Shown here: positions 6,901 through 64,000 of the stretch, one piece after another
How the letters are laid out: each line of letters opens with the position of its first letter
Numbering within the stretch: position 1 is the first letter of the stretch
Assembly (NCBI GenBank): GCA_023515725.1
Contig: JALDTO010000162.1
Coordinates: 224,476 to 288,475, forward strand
DNA length: 64,000 nucleotides
Origin: Amoeboaphelidium protococcarum X5
Lineage: Eukaryota > Fungi > Aphelidiomycota
Reading direction: 5' to 3'
Notes under the pieces: generated by a model
The model's input: only the letters and a program-made list of their open reading frames with translations
What the model was told of the DNA's origin: nothing
Databases searched by the model: none
Made by a program: the position numbers and the translations under genes

Positions 6901-8649
<1,749 letters not shown>

Positions 8650-47963: not shown

Positions 47964-49868
47964 TCAATTGGAACCACTACTATTCCAAAACTTTAAGCGC
48001 TACAAAGCCAGTGCGATTGATCGACGCCAAGAGCTCTTCTTATCCAATGTCATATACCTAGGATGGTGAGCTTTGTAGGAGGAGAGTATGGCCTCTTATT
48101 TAGCAGAAATATCGCTGTGCTTACGTAGCAATGCAAAAAGACGGTACCACCGATTTTGGAGGCAAGTTTCCAACAGAGGCATTGGGTCGACTAATTGATA
48201 ATCTTGTTTGAATAACTTCTACAGTTTGACGAAATCAACCGCGCCACCCTCCTTTCTACTGCGCGCAATCTCCAGCAGGACAATGTCATCAATAGGTAAT
48301 AGCTTGCTCTGCAATTGGTCAACTTGGGCCTACAATTCGTTCAACTTTAGAGAATCTCTACCAAGATCAGCGAGCCTATTCTGATAGTCTCTGTGTCTGG
48401 CTTGATCATTGCGGCATTATTAAATGAACTAATGCTGCCTCAAAAACTCATCTTTCAATAGATCCACTTAAGGATAGCCACTGAACTTCTCCAGTACCAT
48501 CTCTGCAAAAAGATCAGTCCTTGCGTGTGTTGATGACATGCTTAAGACAAACCTCAGCATCTCCTTCACCATACGTGGGAGTAATACTTGCTTTTGCAGC
48601 GCAAAGTTACTATTTTGCGCCTCTATCAGTAAGCTTCTCATCCCCTGGATCAAGTCCGTATTAATGCCAAAAGATGCTGCAAATATAACTTTATAGATTG
48701 GGTGATAAACCTTATTTCTATCCATAAACTACGCGACAGACAGCGGACCACTATGAGATTGTTACTTGATACTGCTAGATGATAAATGTTACATCAGACA
48801 CTTATTCACATCTTCCAGTTGAAAGTACATAGATACACGCCCAATAGCCTTGAATACATTTTCCCCACCATATTTAAAGTAGTGAGCCTTAGCGAGCACG
48901 GCCAGATATCCCCAAGGTTGAAATCTATGATCATTAGCCATCACACCGTCCTCAGTCAAACTTGACACAGAGTTGTCATGTCCTGAAGACCCAGAGTACA
49001 GCTATTACTAAAACAATTCATTTAGCTGCGTCCCACCGGCCATGTCAAGAGCTTGACGCGTCACTTCATCTATGAACTTCACTTGATTACTTTGACGCTG
49101 TGCCATTAACTTGAAGCCATCTGCAAACAACTGTACCAGCTTCTTTAAACTATTCTCATCCACTGGCGCAGAACCTTGTTACATTCTGGCCCCAAAGAGT
49201 CCGAACCCAAAAGCAATGACATGGGCAGACACGGAATCATACTTACCGCGGCACTGTAGCAGACTCCACACAAGCAACTGGCGCAGATTCTCATCTTCAA
49301 ACTCTAACAGACGCGACACCAACTCGGCCTGCTGCATATAAACCAGTGTCAGCATTTTGGATGATACCACTCCCTCAGGTTCAGGTTGGTCAACGTCAGT
49401 CAGCTCTTTCGCGGTGAAGAAGGGAAACTAACGCTGCAGTGTCATATACCTGCAGACAGCAGAATCAGCGTTGCATATGCGAATTATATCGGTGATCGAA
49501 TCCTTGGCAGCCCAGATATTTAAATACCCCTGCTCATAATTCTAAGGCTAAAAAGGCTTCTACGGTGAACGGTCAGAAGTATCCTTACGTTAAGGGCGTG
49601 ACATGTTGATATCATAAATCTCTTTCAATTAATTTAACGCTTCAGGTGGTAGCAACTCCACATAAGAATCTCTTAACTGCGACGCAGGATTCCACTCGCT
49701 GCCTTGTGATAGATCCTCCAGAGCCTTCAAATCATTTAGTTAAGCAGCGCGCGATATAGCAAATTAATACGGATATCCATAGTAAAGGTTGGATAAGAAG
49801 TCACCCGCAACACTACGGTATTGGGACACAGCGATGCCAATCAAAAATAAAGTCTTTGAGAGCTACAT
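47964..49868 (-). CDS. Putative secreted protein, family 1, copy A (634 aa)
   Basis: Signal-like MQLSKTLFLIGIAVSQ; shares YPYQFA, ICN...CRY, ELVSRLL, LLQCRGKYDSVSAHVIAFG, QALDMAGG, FQPWGY, TCL.NRWYRL and SWRRSIA with copies C and/or F. Confidence 0.88.
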
Positions 49869-49963
49869 ACCTTTGCTCAATTATAAATACCTTTAAATCC
49901 GGTAAGTGAGAGGAACTGGACAGATGACAAAGTGTACACTCGGTAGATCTGACTTTCCTAAAT

Positions 49964-50000
49964 TGTGGCGTAAAGTGGCTAAAACAGATCCTGCGCCACA
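49964..50000. promoter_or_regulatory. Inverted motif TGTGGCG-N23-CGCCACA in the divergent spacer of pair A/B
   Basis: Half-sites 49964-70 and 49994-50000; recurs in the other two spacers. Confidence 0.7.
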
Positions 50001-50105
50001 TTGATGTGATCATAACCCATCGGCTGTTTAACTTTGACGATCTTGGAATCTATTTATAGTGCATATAAATCAATAGTTGTACTTTGGTGTAAAGCTTATA
50101 ACGGT

Positions 50106-52091
50106 ATGATCATGTTAAAGAGATCTGTTATCCAACTCTTGGCATTGGGGATCATGGTCTCTGCCATGTTGCCTTAAAACGCGTAGTAAACTGGCTACCA
50201 TGATGTTGGCGTTGGTACGGAAGATCTCGCAGATGGTTTATCACCTAGTGTCCTTCAAGTTCTACGCCCTTCATTGTAGGAGAGGTGTCGTTCTTACAAT
50301 GGGTTAGATAGACTTGCTCGCTACTATGCATCCAGGGGGGATCTCGAATGGTTTGCCTCGTCTTTGGCTCCGTCTTCCAAGTTTGCTTGGTACTATGCTG
50401 ATGCGTTTGGTATGCTGGATCAGAAGTTGAAGTAGAAGTTGCGCGATGAAGGTTAGTTATCACTCCGCCTTGAAGACAGTGGTGTCATGGATGTCGCTGA
50501 ATCTGTTGCATATGCGAAACATGTGCTTGGTGACCCATCAAAGTCTTTGGATGGAGCTGATATCTTCAGAATTATCTTCGCTCAAGATATAGAGTAAATT
50601 GTAGCTCTATTAGTTTATATTGTCGCTGAGCAGCCTGAGCTCTTTCCTTTATTTTATGAATCTATGAGTCTGCATAATTAGAATCGAGCTCTTCATCAAG
50701 AGCGTAAACTTATTAACGAAGTGAAATTGGATGATCGATTGTTATCTGGACTGGTGGCTGCTACGGTACTCTTGACTAATGAATGTCATGTTGCAATAGA
50801 AAGATGGCTATTTGTAGTGCTGCAGCTGGGGAATAAAGCGATGGAGTTTGCGCGTGTGTGTCAGCGGCAGATGTACAAAGAATCCAGTGATCTGAAGGCC
50901 ATCTGCATGACAGCCTTCCGGTCATTATAAATGCAATCTATATAGTAATTTCGTACTATGTAATCGCAGCTAAGTGCTATGAAACCCCGAGTGTATGCAA
51001 TTGCTTCACAGTTTAGGTATTTTACCGAGTAGAGGGACATAGAGGCTTCGGTAAGATCGGTTATGACAATAGCATCACAGTTTGATGCCAAGCATGAAAT
51101 ATAAATCAAGAAATATCTGATCCAGTGGATGCATGAAGGCTTCAGAAACTCTTACTACGACCACAATGATTCTGATACTTATTTGGAAGCTGATATGAAG
51201 TCTTTGGAGATGGTTTACACCATTTTTGTCGAACGTCTGAATGCACTGCACGTAGGATAAGCCCCTTGGTCTCTGCAAAGACATTTGTCTAAAGAGACGT
51301 TCTTAGAGCACATGCCGTACTACTCGGTGTTGATACTGGCATTGTAACACTAGTATGCTTAAGATCCCGCCCCACCGCTGTCACTTACTTACTAGCGTGG
51401 TCTGAACCATAGTTTTTGGCGAAAGTTGATGGCATTCTTCTCTGCTTATTGGAATGCGGTGACGACTAATAATGTGAAGGCTTTCTCTGAATTGTCTTTA
51501 ATCACAAAGTTAGTTCCCATAAGTGACGACAGCAGTTCTCTAGGTCCTCTAGAATTGACGAGTCTGGATACTGTTCATGGTGAATACGTCAGTCCTCATA
51601 AATATCCCAATCTTGCGCGAAAGCCTAGCATTATGCGACTTTTAAAGGATTTTGCTGATTCTAAAGGACAACGTGTTACTGTGGAGACTCTGATGGGCAT
51701 TATGTTGTTTTGCATATAGAATGACATGAAGGATCAGATAACGGTTATTAAGCCGTTGGTGGAGTCCAGAATTGGTTAGTCTTTGGATTCTGTGTTTATG
51801 TCACCGCCTGCAGAGAATATTGAGCCGCCATACGTAAAAACTGCCCGCCCTTGGTGGAAGTCGATTGGATCATTGAAGTCTGGTTCGCCGGTCGCCAGTA
51901 GTGAACGCGTCGATCCCGGTCCATTTAATCATATGAAGGCTTATGATTCTCTGAGCAAATTCTATGAGAGTTATAAGACAGCGAACGAATAGAAGCAAGA
52001 TACTGAAGTGGAATCTGCGGTATGATTATGGCGATTGCGCCACGCTGATAAATATGACTAGATCGAAGTAATCAAAGGACGGCTCTCTTGA
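50106..52091 (+). CDS. Putative secreted protein, family 2, copy B (661 aa)
   Basis: Signal-like MIMLKRSVIQLLALGIMVSA; shares ERC, SKFAWYY...G, EQPELFP, LDDRLLSGLV...LTNEC, FFSAYWNA and LMGIMLFCI with copies D and E. Confidence 0.88.
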
Positions 52092-52377
52092 CGCCTAATA
52101 CAATAAGTAATCGTTAATCTGATGTCATTCCTCTCTCTTGTATTAGTTTAAGGGACAAAGCAGCTTAATCAAATGGCAGTGCTCTATTGTTTTACGCAAC
52201 TGTACATCGCAGACAAGTTCAGATGTAGAACTAACTCTTTCAAGATTTCAAAAAAGAAGTCTGCCACAAATCGACATACCAAACTTAAATACGAACTAAA
52301 AGTAGAAAATAATTCTCAGTGTATTGTATCGTTTAAGTAAATATATCCCACCCTCAGCACTAATCTCCGGCGCCAGA

Positions 52378-54315
52378 TCAATTGTAGAAAGTTTTCCAAT
52401 GTCTCAATCTCTGTAGCGCCACAGCAATAGAACGTCTCCAAGACTTTTATTTGTGAAGAGCCATATACCAAGGATGATGGTTGCTATAATTTGACAACTC
52501 AAATTCACTCTTCGCATCTAAATCACTATAGCGACGCAAAAATGAGTACAAACGATACCAACGGTTCTCTAAGCAAGTTTTTAGCAAAGGCAAAGGATTC
52601 TGCAGAGGATATCCCAAGTCGATCAACAGCTTATGCAGCAGAGGAAAGTCAAACGAGACTGCATTCTAGTGATGCGAGACGCGTCTCATTTCGTAAGTCA
52701 CGACGTCATCTAGACTGACCTTCTTGTTATTAAGCAATTTGATCACAAAATTTACGTCTCTCAGCCTTTCAGTGACATCTTTAATTCTCATTATCTGCGC
52801 AAAATATTGCTACTCAACAGGCAGCAGACCAACACATTTCTTAATATGCTCCCTCTCCTGATTGTACTCGGCTAAGAGATCTTGCGCCTGTTCCCCAATA
52901 CTAAAATTAATCAAACCAGAAATCTCTTCAGCATAGTCTTGACAATTTCTGTCAGGTGTTATATATAAGGAAAAAGACAAAAGCATTCTGACTACCCTCT
53001 GTGTTATGACGAAACTACTGACTCCAGCATTGATCGTCTAGGCATAATCGAGAAGTTAAGTCACGCCTTCTTACAATCGCTCAATTTTTGCTAACGATCT
53101 AGCAAATAACAATCTACTATTAAGATCTGCATCTTTATCAGGAGTCTGGCGCACATCTCTATTAGGCTTCTAGGCATCTGGACGTCTTTGTGCACTATTC
53201 TTCACGAGACATTAGTTGACATCCTGGAGACTTAAGAATTTCCAAATACGCGCAACCATCGCTCTAAATTAAGACTCCTCCAATAGGTATTGAGCTGATA
53301 CTAGCACAGAAAGATAATTCCATGGCTAAAATGGCCCCACAGATACTTCATCGCCACTGTCTTGCAACTTCACAACTGCAAAACTATCATCACTCTACTT
53401 CTTATGGCGAACATCGGACTTCAGTGTAAAGACCTCTTCGTGTAATTAATCGTCGATCTAAATTCCCCCAGCCATGGTCAGTGCTTGGCTAATCAAAGTA
53501 TTCTAAAAGGTGTAGGCATCGCTCTCACTTCTGGGCAGTAACTTGAATCCCTTGGCGAGCAAAGACACCAGACTCTCCAACTGTTCAAGTGTCGGCCTTC
53601 TCTCTAGCTCGTATTGATAGAGACCAAAAGCAATTACATGCGCGTTAATCTCATCAAACTCGCCTCTACATTTCAGTAGAGCCCATACGAACAGATCTTG
53701 CAGCCGATGGTCTTTCACACGCGTTAATTAAGACACTAGCTCCACCTGCTACTAGTAAACTGGTGGCAGTAATTTCGCATTCAACAGCGCGCCTTCACTC
53801 GGCTCCACATTAAAGGTGCGATACTCACCCATCACGCTCAACTCAAATAAAGGAAACTCATTATTGAGTACCATGTATCTGCACACCTCAGGATAAGAAT
53901 TGCATTTATCGACCATTAACTCGCCCGTAGTAGCCTCATACCAAATCTATAGATAAACGTCTTCATAGTTATCTGGAAACTTGGGCCTGACCAAATGCCT
54001 TCCCGCAGAGGAATCATAACTTCCACTGGCAGGATCTTAATCAGCAGTGGATCTAAGCAAAGCTAGCACGCGATCTTTAGCAGCCCCGGAGAAGAAATTG
54101 TCACCAACAAATCGGAATTTCAGCGTTGGATCCCATTCGTAATTGTTGTAAAGATTATCAAGAGCTATCAGATCATTATCCGCACCGGCGCGAGATACCG
54201 CGAATTCGTAGGGATAAGCACGGTAAACGTCCAACAGAAGTGCGTCATGATTGGACACTGCCTCTGCAGGTATCGATGTGATAGCTAACAAGGTAGCGAA
54301 AAGGCAAACTTTCAT
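52378..54315 (-). CDS. Putative secreted protein, family 1, copy C (645 aa)
   Basis: Signal MKVCLFATLLAITSIPAEA; YPYEFA, CNSYPEVCRYMVLNNEFP, FVWALLKCRGEFDEINAHVIAFG, TCLENRWYRL, SWRRSIAVALQRL. Confidence 0.9.
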
Positions 54316-54405
54316 ATCCGATTTCTGATATTTCAACTAGACAGCAATGAGCGAGTGAATGGTCGATTACCAGACCCAACTTTCGTGGCACGTCAATGCA
54401 TTAAA

Positions 54406-54438
54406 TGTGGCGCATTTGATTAGGGTTCCTGCGCCACA
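54406..54438. promoter_or_regulatory. Inverted motif TGTGGCG-N19-CGCCACA in the divergent spacer of pair C/D
   Basis: Half-sites 54406-12 and 54432-38. Confidence 0.7.
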
Positions 54439-54514
54439 CTTTGATAGCGACTCCATCTTTTTGTTCACCTATCCAATTGTATCCATAAAGTGGGATTTAA
54501 AAATTGAAATTGGT

Positions 54515-56479
54515 ATGTATTTCTTATATTTATTATTGCTATCATCTGCCTTGGTGATACATAGTGCTGTTATTGAAAGACAGTAAAGTGTGCGTGTAAA
54601 GTTACCATCTCTCAATCCCGAAACTGCGGAAGATCGGCAAAGCGGATCCGTTGATCAGCGCTGTTCACGGTTTCAGTCAGTTGGCCTATGGTAGCAGATT
54701 AAGTCTTTGGGCGCAGTTGGTTATTAATAATGGTCTGAGAATGATTTTCCTCTTCTTCAGAAAGCCTCTAAGCTGGCATGGCATTATGGAATATACTATG
54801 GTATTGCTGTTGAAGAGTTTAACATCGCTATTGCTGAGGACCCGTTAAGATTATCCCTGCATATTATAGGAGGTGGCAACGAAGAGTCGCGTGAATCACT
54901 GCAATACGCAAAGAGTCTATTGAATGCTCAGACTCCTTTAAATCAAGCTGATGTCAGTAAGGTATTCTTAAAGGGCGACAGGACATTGATAGCCGCCACG
55001 CTGATAGTTCTTGTTCACGAATAACCCAGCCTATTGCCCAAGTTCCAGGAGCGTCTGTTGGAAAAATGGCCTATTGAGAGTTCGGACCTTGAATTAACAT
55101 CATCTGGTTTAGACGAACGTTTATTTACTGGACTAGTTACGTCATCGTTGGCTATTACTGACGAATGCGATAATTAGCTCGGCCCGAATCTTTTGACTGA
55201 CTTGGTGGGGATTACCTAGCAATTTGATATATACTATCTCTGTCATCGCAAACTATCATTTAACGACGAAGCTTAACGTCTAGAATTGTGTTACAGTCTT
55301 TTCAATGGCATCGTCAATTAATAGTTGGCAGATGCAGCGATGGAAGAAGATAAAGCTTTGCTGATGGCTTTCCAGTTGGGTAAATAATTGCGTTTTGTAA
55401 CTTCTGATACAGAAATGACTCAATTTTATGAAAGAATTCATAGTCAGTTGGTTAAGCACCTTCGTTCAAAGGATGCTTCATCTAGAGTCTCCATATCGAT
55501 CTTGCAGGGCTTTGTAGAATCGTTTAGTAGCCGGTTTGATTTGAAATTCATAAAAGAAGATTAAAAATCCATGAGTATTATGTTGTACTTTCCGGTGGAC
55601 ATTGGCACTCTGTCAAGTATCTTGAAGCCTGAGTTTTACAGAGGAAATCTTTACTTTGATGTGCTATGGATCAGCGTCTGTCGGCGCGAAGTATAGTCTC
55701 CACCAGAGGATTAAGAACAGTTTATTGGACAGGTAAAGAGCCAGTTTTGGACTATATTCGCGAATTACTTGGCTGCTTACTGGAGTGCAGTGCAATCTGG
55801 CGACATGGAATCTCTGAAAATACTTTAAGCGCTCACACTGGTGATGCCGCTAACGAACGCAAATGTTCCCTACAATTGGTATTCAGAATATATGAGTCGT
55901 CTCCCCGCCTCCACGTAGGCGATTCCGCCGAAAAATGATAAAGCTGCCTAAACAGCCTTTAGGCTACACCAAATTGAGCGTGCCAAGAATACTTTGGATT
56001 CGGACGATACTAAAGGTGATCAAAAACAGCATGAGTTTAGCATTGAAGGATTGATTTTGGTATTGGCTCATCCACAAGTTTACAGAATTAGCTCTGAAAG
56101 TTTAATGGGCGCTTTAACGTTTTGCATTGAATTCGGTCTAGAATCTGCTACAGAACAGATTACGTCTAAACTTTTAAAATAACTCAATTGGCCAGACTAT
56201 GTTTTCCGTGAAGAATCCCAGCCCACCTCTGCTCTTGATTTACATCGCATGGTTGTACCCGAGACTGCCACTGCTCGATTCAATAGAAAATTTCTGAACG
56301 TATTCCGACCTGCGTCAAGGGTGATATCCGATGATTAAGTTGAAAGTAGAGAGGCTAGGCGTTCATAAATTCATCAGTTGATGAAATAGGCTTATGAGGC
56401 AAAGGGGCGTGACTTGAAACTGTACGTTCGCGCTGCTCGGATTGTTCACTTTAGAGGGCCCGTTGCGTTTGAGTTTTGA
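54515..56479 (+). CDS. Putative secreted protein, family 2, copy D (654 aa)
   Basis: Signal MYFLYLLLLSSALVIHSA; QRC, SKLAWHYGIYYG, EQPSLLP, LDERLFTGLV...ITDEC, LAAYWSA, LMGALTFCIE, RRSQIHQLMK. Confidence 0.88.
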
Positions 56480-56736
56480 TTGATTCCCATATTAGAAAAG
56501 CCGTAGCTGATTATCTCCATAGTTTATCTGGCAACTACAATACATAAAATATAGTAATAATTATTCATTTGGCGAGTTTTTATTTATTACTAAAAATCGG
56601 TTTACTTACTATTGCTATACGATATCATCGCGACGCGAATTACTTAAGGAAGCGCTTTCTTGTGAAAAAAACTTATTTGAAACAATCGCCGTACTTTGTT
56701 AGGAAGTCTTATTTAATATTTACTTTTATAATAGAA

Positions 56737-58032
56737 ATGTCCTGGATATAAGCTATTGCTGAGTTTAATAATTCACAAGGCCTATAAAATGAGTCTGCCG
56801 CTGAAGACTGGCAACATTTATAGCCGCTGTAGAGCCACACTCAGTTCAGTCGAAATGTCGATCCAAATATACAGAAAGCCGTACAAAAAGCTGTGCACTC
56901 CCTAGTCATTGAGTAGAAAAATGCATCCACGCTGAGCAATGAAGATTTGGATCAGATCAGCGAAATGCTTAAAGAGGTGGCTGTTGATGGAGATTACATT
57001 AACTATCACAATTTCAAGCTTATTGGTCAGTCGCTGCCAAAGTTTTAATCATACTTCACACCATCAGTGTTTGTGCGCTTTAGAATGAATGAGAATGGCC
57101 ACATCAGTTCCGGTCAGCTGTACAATTTTATAGTTAGAAGAGCCTCGCTGTGTCAGGAGAGAGTCTGTATCAGTATGTATGATCAAGATGGTGATGGCAT
57201 GCTTACTCTGGATGAATTCGAGCAGTACCTGGCGGATCTGATTCCAACATTTCCGTAATTATAATAGATGGATCAAGATTTCAAGCCATTCTACTTGTGC
57301 AGTGCTGTCCGTAAATTTTACTTCAACTTGCACTATAGTCGGCCTACTGTTGGTAGGTAGCAAGATTAGCGCAACTGCATAAAGATTACTGATATCTTAC
57401 TAAGTCCCATACTGAGCGAGTTCTTTGAGTTGTAACAACCTGAAGTTGATGGTAAACTGCTGAGTACTAATTGGTTCTCTTTATAAAGTGCATTGAAGGT
57501 CTACAGCTGGTTTGTTGAACTCGATCAGGATCATAATGGTATGCTGTCGCGATCGGAACTGTATTAATTTGCAAAGGGGAGATACACCAGTGAGTTTATA
57601 GACCGAATATTACAAGAGTATCTGTCTTTTAATGGCGAACTTGATTACAAGTCGTATCTCGATTTTGTGTTGGCTGCTAATGATGTTCACACTAAAGAGT
57701 CTATGCGCTATATGTTCACACTGCTGGACATTCGACAATAAGGATTTCTGGACTGGTTCACGCTGCACTTCTTTATGAAGGCACAGGTGGCCAAGATATC
57801 TCAGATGCCTTAGAACAGGTCTTTTGTACAATCGTTTAACATGAATGATATGATTACAGAGCTGTTTGATATGGCCAAGGCACCATTGCGCAGTAGTGGT
57901 ACTTAATAATCCTCTACTGGAATTATTGGGTAAATACGAATGAATGATCTGATAAATTGTGGTGTCGGAGGTACAGTGATCAGTCTCCTTATCGACACGT
58001 AAGCCTTGTTACAGAACCAATTCAAAGATTGA
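56737..58032 (+). CDS. PPP2R3C: PP2A regulatory subunit B'' gamma-like EF-hand protein (PPP2R3C/FASS type, 431 aa)
   Basis: YDQDGDGML, LIPTFP[TAA=Q]L, FYLCSAVRKFYF, NWFS..SALKVY..FVELDQDHNGMLS, LDYKSYLDFVLA. Confidence 0.88.
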
Positions 58033-58333
58033 TTATTTACAGATAATGTTGATACTACTGAATAATATGTCTTTTCGTATATATATATATATTATGCTTA
58101 ACAATCGATATCTAGACCGTAAAGTTTCACATTATTGAATTCCCTTCGGAGATGATTAAAATCTTCTTCAGATGCAAGTGCAGTATGGACAATATTAAGG
58201 TATAGTCGATAAGATTGATTGAACTTCGAAATGCAGAGAGCGACGCGTCTCTTCTCTCTTTCTCCGTTTATTCATTCATTCACTCACTCTTTTACGTACA
58301 TAGTGAAAGGCTCTCTGTATTATACTGTAAGCA

Positions 58334-60319
58334 ATGTCTAGTAAGCCAAAGTTGAAATTAAAATTTAAATCCTCTCTTCCACAGACTGTCAGTGCAGGAG
58401 AAGCATCGCCACTCGTGTAATTACCAAAGCCGTCATAAGATTTGGTAAAGTCGCAGAGTGACCCTCATGGTAATAGTTCAGGGAGCTTATCTACGCAACA
58501 GTAATAGTAATAACAGAGCCTACCCAAAATATCATTTAAATTTCCGTAATCATAGTAATCTTAGATCAAGAAGGAATTATAACAAGACGCTGATAATGCC
58601 GGTTCATCTCTCACATTATAGACAGTAAACATGGCTGCGTTCCCAACGGTGGAATAGTCTCCTCTTAAATAGTAGTAGTCGTAGAGTTAAATACCGGAAT
58701 AGATTAATAGTCCCACGCCTAGTTAGACATCTCTTAAACTAAAGTTTAAACCGAAAGTATCGCTTAATGAAGGTGGGGGTGGTGAGAATAGAGTTAGAAT
58801 TCAAGACTAACAGCAGCATCAGCCTGGACTGAGCAGATCTTAATCTATAGTTTCCATTGCCAGTCGGAAGTCATCAATTGCATCTGTTCATAAGAAATAG
58901 AAAGTGAAGCCACCTAGAATTCCAGATTCTGATGAAGATGAGACTCTTAATCCGGTGGAGGAGCACTTGATATTCAGATTACCCCGATATGAAGCTGGGG
59001 ATGTTAGAAATCTACCCGCTGGTTCTTATGCCCAGAAAATAGTTGAAGCCACCAATAAGATCAAGCAGATGATAAAGACGCGTTCTGTAGATATCAAGAC
59101 GTGCCTCAAGATTGAATTTAAGGATTAGCGTAGAGTTTTGCTTACATACAATCATTAAGCTGAAGAAGGCGGCGATAATGATAATGCCCAAGATACGGTG
59201 TAAATGTGCGGCAAACTCGTCGACTTGCCCTGTATTATTGAGGCTCAGCGTTCCTTTGACAGGCGGTAGTTCCACAAGATTTCCGATATATGTTAGATGA
59301 TTCAGGTGGAGAAATTGGACTTTGGCCGAGTTGGTGTGTCGCAAGGATCAATTGAGAACTATCTTAATCAGTATTTTGCGTAGTCCACTCAGGGCGCATT
59401 CTAGTCATCTCTAAATGAAGATTACATTTCCAACTCTGGAATTACACCTCCACTTAAGCATTGTAGAGTGAGGCGATTCAGAAGGCGGGTGAACAGGCGA
59501 ACGGTGGAGAGTATCGAGCGTGAAGTGGCCAGGCTGTTGAAGGAGGACGCCCAATCGCTTGAAGTTGTCGGATCTTTTATTGACGCCAGAGAGGTGGAGG
59601 AGCGTCTGATGCGAGATGCTGACAACGATAATGATGAGTAAACTCAGGGTGATGGTGAGACTGAGGGTGCTGGAGTTACTGCAGAAGTTAATGAAGATGG
59701 CGAGGCCGTTGTCGACGAAGACGATGATGAAGATGACCAGATTACCGTTAGTGAACACCCAGGAACTAACAAAGATGGTAAAACGGAACAGACTTCAGAC
59801 GATGATGATGATGAGGAAGAAGAAGAAGATGATTATGGAGTTGATGGTAAAGTTGCGAATGGTCAGTTGGGTGATGGAGCGAAAGGCGATGGCGCGGGCT
59901 CAGATGCTTAGAAAGATGACGATTAGATTGCTGAAGGTGAAGAAGTAGATGACGCGTTGGATATAGAGAATGAGCCAGATCCTGAATTGAGATCCCTGTT
60001 GTAACAGAATAAGCTGTTGAATGAAGAAATGGCTGATCTCAATTAAAAACTGGATTAAAAGACGGCGTAGAAATAGGCTGCTGGTAATCCTATTATCATC
60101 AAGAGATTTGATGACATTATTAATCGATTAAAGGACGAGGTTGAGAAGAAGAAATAGAGTCTCGCTGCAGTTTAACGGTCAATAGTTGAGAAGAGGTACA
60201 GTATTGCCGACGATGAAGATGACATGGACGATGCATTGGATTTGAATGAGGAAGATGAAAGTATTGCTGGTGAAGTTTAAGAAGTTGGTGCTACTCAGCA
60301 ACAGTTAACTTTAGATTGA
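58334..60319 (+). CDS. TAF7: TFIID subunit 7 (661 aa)
   Basis: VEEHLIFRLP, GKLVDLPCIIEAQRS, FHKISDICQM, GITPPLKHCRVRRFRRR, acidic region and C-terminal coiled coil with NPIIIKRF. Confidence 0.92.
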
Positions 60320-60525
60320 TTTTCAATCATTATCGTGTCAATATAATCTTAACAGTCCGCGAGATATATAATTTATCATAGAGCAAACTTCGATGCAAAA
60401 AATGCCCTGACTTTATTCAATTGGGAAAGCTCATATTGGTATAGTAACTGCTCTAAGTATATAAAATAGACTTTATTTTCTTCAGTTCTACATACCAATG
60501 ACTTGGACTGATATAATTCATTAGC

Positions 60526-62361
60526 TCACTTTGATAAATTGTACGGATCAAATACTGATCCTCTGGCACGCACAGTCTACGCAGCTTTGAAGAAGTGATC
60601 AGCAATCTTTTGGTGCTCATTTTACTGCGACAACTTCATCAACTAATGAATCTGAGCCCGTCTCTTGTTCGGACCATCATTTACTCCCTCTGGATAAACC
60701 CAATTCTAGGGCAAAAATACGTTATTTAAGCCCCTGAGCCACCATTCGCCAGTGGATTCAGCCTCAGTGTAACCAGACAAGTCCGGTAAATTAGTAGGCT
60801 AGGCTTCTTCTCCCTACTCTTCTTCAGCTCCTGACTGCTATAACTTTTAAACTGCGGACTCGATGACTTTAGTTAAATCCTTCAGGTCGTGCTCAATAGA
60901 AAAAGTCAACGCGCCCAACAGAGCATCCAGACTTAATTGTTAGCCATCCAAGGCCAACTTCAATAGCTTCACAATGCTCCACTTATAGTCAGAATTTCCA
61001 ACAGTATCCTACTCTAGCGCTTTAACTACATTCATCTCGTCTTTTACCGGAATCAAATCAGGAAGTGCACTCAGTATGTTAAAAGTCGCTTAATCATCGG
61101 ATTGAATAGCTGTCCAGTAAGCAGACAGAAATTCAGCAAATTGTTGAACTACACCTGATTCAAGCTCGTATTAAGCAGCAGGCGTTAATAAGTCGCTATC
61201 CAGTCCCTAAGCATGGTATGCAAACCAGAGTACGCCAAAGTATGTTTTGACACTAATTTGACTTGCTCTACTCTAAAATTTCCACTACTGTTAACTATTG
61301 AGAGCTTAACTCAGATAATCCAATGAAGCAAGATCATCTTTAACATACTGTGGCTCAAAGGACTTTTCAAAAGACCGCACAAATCCTTCCAGTACCATGT
61401 CGAAGGCCTACTCCTAAACAGCTCTAACATTATGGTCGCGATGAGGATGTCCAACCACTATTGATAAGGCATTTTACACATTATCCGAATCACCCATGTA
61501 CCTTATCTACGCACCAAAGGCCTCCCTGGCAGCACGAAGATCATTCTAAGACATTGAGCCGGAATGCTTAAAGACTAAACGTGTGAAATAGCCAAACAAA
61601 TCAGCACAGATAGATGATTCTGAAGGCCCAGTACGACCAAGTAGATTGTATCGATTGCATACGCGCATTATTTCAAGTGACTGAAGGCCAGGCAGCAGAA
61701 GCGGCATCAAATCTCTACCAAGCTGCATCTCACATTCTTCAACCAACACTATAGACACAGCGGCCAAGCCCACCAACAGTTATTCATCTAAATTATTTCT
61801 TAGACCCGCTTAAGATGGCAGACGGTTCTACTAACTCATCTGCCGTAAACGCTCTTTATAAGCAGGCAATAGACTTGGCTGTCGCGCAACGATATAAATG
61901 ATCAATCCAGCCAGCTCTGACGCGACACTGCGAAAGAACACCCGGCCAACATCAACCTCATCTATGGGAACCTTATAACTATCAAAAAGCGTGGACTTTT
62001 CTAAATCATTCAAAACACTACCAGTGAAATACAGCCCAGCGTTTGGATTTTAAGATAGATGATCTTTCAAATTATGGGACAAAACTCCATAATAATCGGA
62101 ATAGAATAAGACCAGTTTAGATCTTTGACCAAGCTTTTTAGACAGAATATCGCGATTCTTGTTGGCAGCAAAATACTTGACCAAAGGCTCTATACCAGAA
62201 TCTCGAAATATAGCACAACGATTTTCACTAATAATTGTAGATTGATCTACGCCAAGCTTTGCATCAATCAAGTTGGGTGGGCTTAGTTCATTGTGAGATC
62301 GAGGGACAGATGAGACGCGTGTAACCAAAATAGCTGACAGTGCAAGTAGCACAAACTTCAT
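60526..62361 (-). CDS. Putative secreted protein, family 2, copy E (611 aa)
   Basis: Signal MKFVLLALSAILVTRVSS; NRC, SKLVLFYSDYYG, RQPSLLP, LDEQLLVGL...VEEC, FLSAYWTA, LLGALTFSIE, RRAQIHQLMK. Confidence 0.88.
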
Positions 62362-62485
62362 TGCGAATTCAGTTCTTAAGCAAGACGTATCCTTATAATC
62401 GCTTACACCAACAAAGTAAGTGGATCCTTAAAGAGAGTCTGAACAAGGAGTTGCACTAATAACTTGCCGCCTTTGTCGTTGTAAA

Positions 62486-62518
62486 TGTGGCGTTGACCGA
62501 GTTCTAGTCTGCGCCACA
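62486..62518. promoter_or_regulatory. Inverted motif TGTGGCG-N19-CGCCACA in the divergent spacer of pair E/F
   Basis: Half-sites 62486-92 and 62512-18. Confidence 0.7.
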
Positions 62519-62638
62519 ATTCGCCCAGATTAGCCATTACTATGATGTTCTCATATCTGGGTTGATCAATCTTATCCCTTGAAAAATTTTCTATTATTGG
62601 CGTATTTCTGTTCTGAATCTTGTAGTTTATTTCTTAAG

Positions 62639-64000
62639 ATGTAGTGGAATTCTATTGTGATTACAGTAGTTTTGGTGGCGTGTTAGGTGGTACAATCAAC
62701 GGCTACATCTGACGCTTTCTTACCAAGCCTTTACAATGGTTATCCGTATGAGTTTGCAATTATCAATGCAGCGAGATAGGAAGACACCAATGCACTCCAA
62801 GCTCTATATGCTGGCTATGAGTGGGAACCTAAGGACAAGTTTTAGGGTGTCAATGTCGATTATTTTACTCCTCAGGTTCGTCAGCTCTTGTCGTCTGGTG
62901 CATCTAATGTCCGCTACAGTCCTTTGGGCACAACGCGTTAATACTTGCCTGCTGACTATTAGAAGGTGTATCTGCAGCTTTATGGTGAAAGTCAAACAGT
63001 CGCTTCCATGATCTCCATCTGTAATAGTAACGCTGCGGCCTGCAGATACATGGTGTTAAATCGTGAGTTTCCCGTATTCCAGCAGAAGCTTCTCGGTCTG
63101 ACAGAGGACGAGCAATCTCGAATGACAACCCTGTTCGAGACTACTAATGAGTTAAATGACAGGTCGTTTAGACCGATTTATCAGATGCAGATTGAGTTGG
63201 TGTCGCGCTTGCTTGATTTTAATGATTCGGAGTTGCGCGATCTGTTTGTTTGGGCTCTGTTGAACTGTCGTGGTAGATATGACTCTGTAACTGCTCATGT
63301 TATTGCCCTTGGCCTTGGGTACTTTGAGGCAAAGAATCCGTACAATGAAGAGAAGTATAGAAGACTAATTGGATTGCTGGCATCTGGGTACAGGTACTTG
63401 GCCGACGCGTAGTAGGATCCTATTCAGTTTCAATACAGTTTGACCAAGTAAGCCATTGATATGGCTGGAGGTGCAAAAGTGAATCGCGCCATTAGAGAGG
63501 AGACTTATAGAAAGGTTTCACATCGTAAAGGCTTTCAGTTGAGTCTTTAGGACAATGGAGACTGGATTTCACCTCCCAAGTTTTAGCCATGGGGATACCT
63601 GGCCGTATTAGTGACTGCTGAATATGAGATGTAGGATGCTGAGATGTGGCTTTTGCTGTTTGGCCGTATCTCAAAGTTCTTGTGCACTTCTGAAGCTAAC
63701 GATTGTCTCTTTTAATAGCACTTGGTGGAATCCTCTCGCGGTCGTGATTCTGTGTCATCTGTTGCTAATTACCTTAATGGCTGGTACAACAAATATTCAA
63801 GCATGAGGCTGGCGCTGGCTCTTTCTTTGGCTAGATCTCCTAGGCTGTATGATTATGTTGGTTTGGTAATCAATCACGGTCTACATATTAAGGCAGGACT
63901 AGAAAGCTCTAGTATAATGCAAAGAATAGCCAAGATCTTGCTGAGGTTCAGCTTGTCCATTGCTTTAGATTAGTCTTCCAATGCAATTTCCACTAGAATT
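62639..64000 (+). CDS. Putative secreted protein, family 1, copy F (runs off the window end)
   Basis: Signal MQWNSIVITVVLVACQVVQS; YNGYPYEFA, ICNSNAAACRYMVLNREFP, ELVSRLL, FVWALLNCRGRYDSVTAHVIALG, QAIDMAGG, FQPWGY. Confidence 0.9.

Follow-up and report, generated by a model that had tools for sequence, protein, structure and literature searches.

A selectively maintained gapped palindrome at the centre of three divergent gene pairs in the aphelid Amoeboaphelidium protococcarum

A stretch of 64,000 nucleotides (nt) from Amoeboaphelidium protococcarum X5 (GenBank assembly GCA_023515725.1, contig JALDTO010000162.1, positions 224,476 to 288,475; hereafter the window) contains three modules, each consisting of one family 1 and one family 2 gene arranged head-to-head across a short spacer. 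We found that the centre of every spacer is occupied by a gapped palindrome, TGTGGCG-N19/23-CGCCACA, and that this palindrome is a selectively maintained cis-element in which purifying selection acts on the arms only. We infer, with a probability of roughly 0.7, that it is a shared control element of the three head-to-head pairs and that a C2H2 zinc-finger factor binds at each arm.

The original prediction placed the palindrome in all three spacers, and exact matches are indeed present at 49964-50000, 54406-54438 and 62486-62518, with gaps of 23, 19 and 19 nt between the 7-mers of modules 1, 2 and 3, respectively. Searching the window for TGTGGCG-N10-30-CGCCACA returned these 3 matches, compared to 0 in 100 dinucleotide-preserving shuffles, and allowing up to 2 mismatches in the palindrome yielded only two extra window matches, where ~1.2 were expected. 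AAWTGTGGCG and CTGCGCCACA were found in all three spacers, every copy on the + strand. The TGTGGCG 7-mer occurs 10 times in the window, of which 6 are arms and 4 stand alone; lone half-sites had been noted at ~42383 and ~52418, and both are present (the second at 52417), together with two more at 7215 and 12063. The architecture of the elements is listed below, with reference to eleven spacer versions taken from the window, from contig C154 of the same assembly and from two contigs of strain MP228.

49964..50000: module 1 element; weak arm at 49964-49970 (extended TGTGGCGTAA), 23-nt linker, strong arm at 49991-50000 (CTGCGCCACA)
49975..49979, + strand: third GTGGC, within the module 1 linker, 10-11 nt past the left arm; GTGGC kept in 3/3 spacer versions
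50001..50023, + strand: extra conserved block adjoining the strong arm, in module 1 only; 2 changes over the stretch
54406..54438: module 2 element; arms matching at 9/10 and 10/10; linker of 19 nt here, 20 nt in each of the three remaining versions
62486..62518: module 3 element; 19-nt linker; strong arm towards family 1, not family 2

Read centre-ward, the arms follow the consensus AA-n-TGTGGCGCAG, giving a half-site of 10-12 base pairs (bp). In each spacer one arm is the full 10-mer, and the other consists of the 7-mer core with zero to two further bases. In modules 1 and 2 the full arm is on the family 2 side, in module 3 on the family 1 side, and the asymmetry of the arms is therefore not tied to gene identity. 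Over the versions compared, the linker measures 19, 20, 22 or 23 nt and is free in sequence, so that the arms lie 26-30 bp apart from centre to centre, without a fixed helical phase.

The selective maintenance of the arms is apparent when the paralogous modules and the versions of each spacer are compared. Paralogue protein identity is 33-36% for family 1 and 21-26% for family 2; because it is so low, neutral spacer DNA between paralogues must be randomised. The spacers had been described as otherwise unalignable, and we observed accordingly that no alignment is obtained beyond the element and that every k-mer of at least 7 nt common to the three stems from the palindrome. Among the eleven versions, the arms (2 x 7 nt) are variable in 1/42 columns (2%), the linker in 16/62 (26%) and the flanks in 229/706 (32%), linker and flanks varying to a similar extent. 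Fisher's test of the arms against the 245/768 variable columns in the rest of the spacers gave p = 3e-6, a value calculated over columns, which are not independent events, and over copies that are related. The module 1 spacer is 51% identical three ways, and within it the segment from the left arm to ~23 nt beyond the right arm is nearly intact. The sole arm change detected, a T to A in module 1 that is present in C154 and in MP228, is uncompensated.

The versions used here come from collinear copies of the same locus. Positions 36601-64000 of the window correspond to G000:C154:60001-87593 (L006-L009) with 86-91% identity. The window and C154 versions occur at similar DNA-read depth in the source sample, a second sample has diverged versions, and a duplicated genome has been reported for Amoeboaphelidium protococcarum (PMC10608142); the two are diverged haplotypes or subgenomes. 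Two contigs of strain MP228 (GCA_023515745.1) keep the element as well, and these copies (L010/L011 and L088) resemble C154 (95-97% identity) more closely than the window (84-91%). For the module 1 spacer and N-terminal coding ends, 49700-50200 compared with C154:73150-73730, identity is ~51-64%, compared to 84-90% in modules 2 and 3, which suggests that the module 1 pair evolves faster.

The position of the palindrome near the spacer midpoint, also part of the original prediction, becomes visible once the genes are read with TAA and TAG as sense codons. ORFs (open reading frames) in the standard code are short and broken around the palindromes; genetic code table 6 gives a row of long intronless ORFs, and matches between paralogues pass through in-frame TAA and TAG, never TGA. 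Reading of UAR as glutamine has been reported for this species (PMC5304391). In the table 6 reading, the distance between palindrome centre and ATG-ATG midpoint is 5, 5.5 and 2 bp, and 76-124 nt separate the arms from the nearest start codon. Module 3 has the opposite orientation to modules 1 and 2. The spacers and the genes that border them are as follows, the spacer limits being those of table 6 ORFs.

49869..50105: spacer 1, 237 bp from ATG to ATG; NCBI gene calls at the orthologous locus L010 agree
54319..54514: spacer 2, 196 bp; gene calls on L010 and L088 agree
62362..62638: spacer 3, 277 bp; gene calls on L088 agree
47964..49868, - strand: family 1 gene of module 1, 634 amino acids (aa), hydrophobic N-terminus
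50106..52025, + strand: family 2 gene of module 1, 639 aa
52378..54318, - strand: family 1 gene of module 2, ~646 aa
54515..56479, + strand: family 2 gene of module 2, 654 aa
60526..62361, - strand: family 2 gene of module 3, 611 aa
62639..64000, + strand: family 1 gene of module 3, extending beyond the window; 633 aa in relatives

The spacer as coding sequence was excluded by a 1-nt linker indel that shifts the frame between versions of spacer 2. A hydrophobic, signal-peptide-like start was found in 6/6 family genes, whose products are orphan and probably secreted proteins of ~610-650 aa. One orthologue is KAI3653049.1, annotated as a hypothetical protein of Amoeboaphelidium protococcarum. 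No family was found in a Pfam search with eight stop-free pieces of the flanking family genes, a search of the ESM Atlas with the family proteins gave no usable match, and no relatives were found in JGI metagenome contigs. AlphaFold, run on a 3-sequence alignment, returned an all-helical, low-confidence model with a mean predicted local distance difference test score (pLDDT) of 44.

We scanned the 23.6 Mb assembly, in which the window's contig is C162, for further copies of the paired site. The exact palindrome occurs 5 times, as the three window sites and two sites on C154. The relaxed form GTGGCG-N12-30-CGCCAC was found at 13 places, compared to 7 for a reversed control; the three modules, once on C162 and once on C154, make up 6 of these, and the 7 others all fall within long open frames. 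Thus, outside open frames, the paired site is confined genome-wide to the modules and their C154 copies, which extends to the whole assembly the earlier remark that no such pair was noticed in other intergenic regions. Family 1 has exactly six genomic copies, and a search of 1.84 billion representative proteins recovered nothing beyond the three clusters of the family itself; every known pair therefore bears the element. Family 2, for which no other members were found either, is more diverged: a search with its N-terminal exon of module 3 detected its own gene, the C154 copy and one weak match at the place of module 1 on C154.

The palindrome had been proposed as a symmetric site of a dedicated bidirectional promoter that could define a regulon. 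The first part of this proposal was sustained to the extent that a selected element lies centrally in three divergent spacers; the wider regulon was not, since lone half-sites occur at background frequency and the paired site is restricted to the modules. The 10-mer CTGCGCCACA is present 56 times genome-wide, compared to 39 for the reversed control, and of these 56 copies 6 are in modules and ~11 in a multi-copy open frame, leaving 39, the control count. The genomic context was checked at 50 lone sites and 20 control sites. Outside open frames of at least 150 aa we counted 9/39 lone copies, compared to a background of 10.6% (binomial p = 0.018) and to 2/20 for the control 10-mer (Fisher p = 0.20), homeologous copies among them not being independent. 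The genes downstream of these nine intergenic sites are unrelated, and 1/9 has a signal-peptide-like start. We therefore have no evidence of a regulon beyond the three gene pairs.

In the mechanism that we propose, the two inverted half-site copies, one full and one weaker, would serve as an upstream regulatory element at the centre of a common promoter. One sequence-specific factor would be recruited to both arms and would turn both genes of a pair, one from each family, on or off jointly, and the same factor could coordinate all three pairs. The likeliest binder would be a protein with C2H2 zinc fingers, a single molecule occupying each arm; in the genome, at least 30 C2H2 fingers passed the Pfam cut-off. 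Originally the element was probably a perfect palindrome of 10 bp, and after duplication one arm would have decayed independently in the different modules.

The choice of a C2H2 protein as candidate comes from comparison with characterised binding sites. Met31 and Met32 of Saccharomyces cerevisiae are C2H2 zinc-finger proteins that recognise a TGTGGC core with the consensus AAACTGTGGC; in universal protein-binding microarrays the Met32 core is TGTGGCG, with an A-rich 5' preference, monomer binding and a 10-bp core model, CTGTGGCGCT (PMC3737730). In the window, 6/6 arms bear the exact 7-mer core and an A-rich 5' flank, the strong arm continues with GC like the 10-bp core model, and the variable spacing is consistent with monomers. 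Here, in an aphelid, the site is an inverted pair in the divergent promoters of orphan secreted-protein genes and not of sulphur-metabolism genes. The calcineurin-dependent response element, the site of Crz1, which is also a C2H2 protein, has been described as GNGGC(G/T)CA for ScCrz1 and GGAGGC(G/A)C(T/A)G for CaCrz1 (PMC6942403). Written as TGTGGCGCAG, the strong arm fits the former at 8/8 positions and also fits the 3' seven bases of the latter. The strong arm conforms to GNGGC(G/T)CA in 11/11 versions, as do the two arms of module 2.

The likeness to E2F or Runx sites that had been suggested earlier is weaker than the likeness to these C2H2 sites. The strong arm, read as TGTGGCGC, is one position off TTTGGCGC (E2F consensus TTTSGCGC), the weak arms of modules 1 and 3 are without the GCGC core, and no E2F_TDP domain was detected in a six-frame genome search, a result that does not prove its absence; an E2F site was rejected on these grounds. 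In the upstream activating sequence of GAL1-GAL10, Gal4 sites of the form CGG-N11-CCG are bound by a Zn2Cys6 dimer at a fixed 11-bp gap. There, too, a central dyad-symmetric element lies between two divergent genes, which in our case would likewise be co-regulated; the aphelid half-site, however, is without a CGG triplet, and its gap is long and variable. The nearest analogy in gene arrangement is found in Fusarium oxysporum, where divergent effector pairs, Avr2-SIX5 and SIX8-PSL1, have a common promoter (PMC10942635). As in that fungus, two unrelated secreted-protein families are repeatedly placed head-to-head with a promoter presumably in common. The aphelid belongs to another kingdom-level lineage, its proteins of ~610-650 aa are unrelated, and a defined conserved palindrome is present.

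Several points weigh against a promoter element bound by C2H2 factors. The Fisher test is subject to the dependence among columns and copies stated above. The likeness to yeast zinc-finger motifs is one of sequence and does not imply orthology, and it is incomplete: no arm has a C directly 5' of the core, where T, A or G stands instead, and the full AAACTGTGGC is not matched, while the weak arms of modules 1 and 3 (GTGGCGTA and GTGGCGTT) miss the Crz1 consensus. The start codons that delimit the spacers rest on signal-peptide-like N-termini and NCBI models, and one NCBI model (671 aa, L011) begins upstream of the element. This model is the orthologue of the family 2 gene of module 3 (L011:3885-5900, JALECJ010000005.1); its sister copy, L088:7892-9727, is 611 aa long, with the methionine of the signal peptide as its start. 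The 671-aa model has probably been over-extended because stop codons are scarce where only TGA terminates.

Alternatively, the palindrome could be a symmetric site for an obligate dimer that touches both arms at once, instead of two monomer sites, as the inverted, central arrangement in every spacer and the conservation of both arms would suggest. Among the versions, however, the gap is 19, 20, 22 or 23 nt, which moves the arms to a different helical face; beyond the 7-mer core, one of the two arms is degenerate in every case, and the published factors with a TGTGGCG core bind as monomers (PMC3737730). Because the 26-30 bp spacing shifts the helical face, two independent monomers are favoured over a rigid dimer, and we consider the dimer unlikely. 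Selection could instead act on a structure, either a cruciform in the DNA or a hairpin formed by an upstream or antisense RNA, and each site does fold into a 7-12 bp hairpin with z-scores of -1.7 to -5.5 relative to shuffles. Good folding is trivial for any inverted repeat, however. The arms are conserved in sequence, without compensatory change even at the single altered position, the loop is unconstrained, and the element lies at least 76 nt upstream of both ATGs. An Rfam search gave no match at E up to 1, and a known RNA family was rejected by the same result. A structural role is thus very improbable.

We regard as least probable of all, and hardly credible, the explanation that the similarity is historical, that is, a leftover of duplication, a product of gene conversion, or the remnant of a mobile element or recombination site. 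The modules were duplicated from one ancestor, one of them in inverted form, and young mobile elements are present in the genome, both of which would be compatible with such an origin. At 21-36% protein identity, however, neutral sites are saturated; conversion would have homogenised the linker and flanks too, and the arms alone match. Furthermore, no copies beyond those of the modules exist outside long open frames in the genome, and both subgenomes and both strains have retained the same arms. A control element with one C2H2 monomer at each arm remains the reading that we prefer. We find doubtful an extension of it in which families 1 and 2 would form an aphelid-specific secreted system of two components that is expressed during one step of algal infection and has the element and its factor as a dedicated switch. 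In that extension, an old C2H2 mode of recognising TGTGGCG, common to yeast Met31/32 or Crz1, would have been re-used for parasitism genes.

Aphelids are the sister lineage of fungi, and the organism that carries the element is a parasite of algae, relevant to algal cultivation ponds and to ideas on the origin of fungi. We found no published description of a cis-regulatory element for aphelids, although no search was aimed at that question. That divergent promoters can share a palindromic element is well established, and the element represents no new class of mechanism. It does define a very small target set, with six genes per subgenome, a clearly delimited site and a limited number of C2H2 candidates. 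Should these paired, probably secreted orphan proteins have a role in algal infection, the element would mark their common control.

Two further genes of the window are read as table 6 ORFs.

56737-58032, + strand: EF-hand protein gene
58334-60319, + strand: TAF7 gene

TAA and TAG are sense codons throughout the window (for example at 49700-49800 and 62730-62790), and TGA alone ends the long ORFs; genes that appear fragmented or intron-rich in the standard code are continuous in table 6.

The multi-copy open frame that accounts for the excess of lone 10-mers is ~729 aa long and was found at L012 (G000:C13:151465-154474) and at least 10 further loci (L016, L022, L024, L026, L036, L038, L043, L044, L056 and L059), three compared copies being ~99% identical. 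Its C-terminal piece matches Pfam PF07282 (Cas12f1-like TNB domain, E = 5e-12) and contains a RuvC-like HRDVNAARNI motif, so that the frame resembles a nuclease element of the TnpB/Fanzor type, here in the genome of an aphelid. Among the lone intergenic strong-arm copies, L027 (G000:C154:642634) and L061 (G000:C264:2237470) have the string ACTGCGCCACATTTCC in common and are possibly homeologous; L061 is located between divergent open frames.

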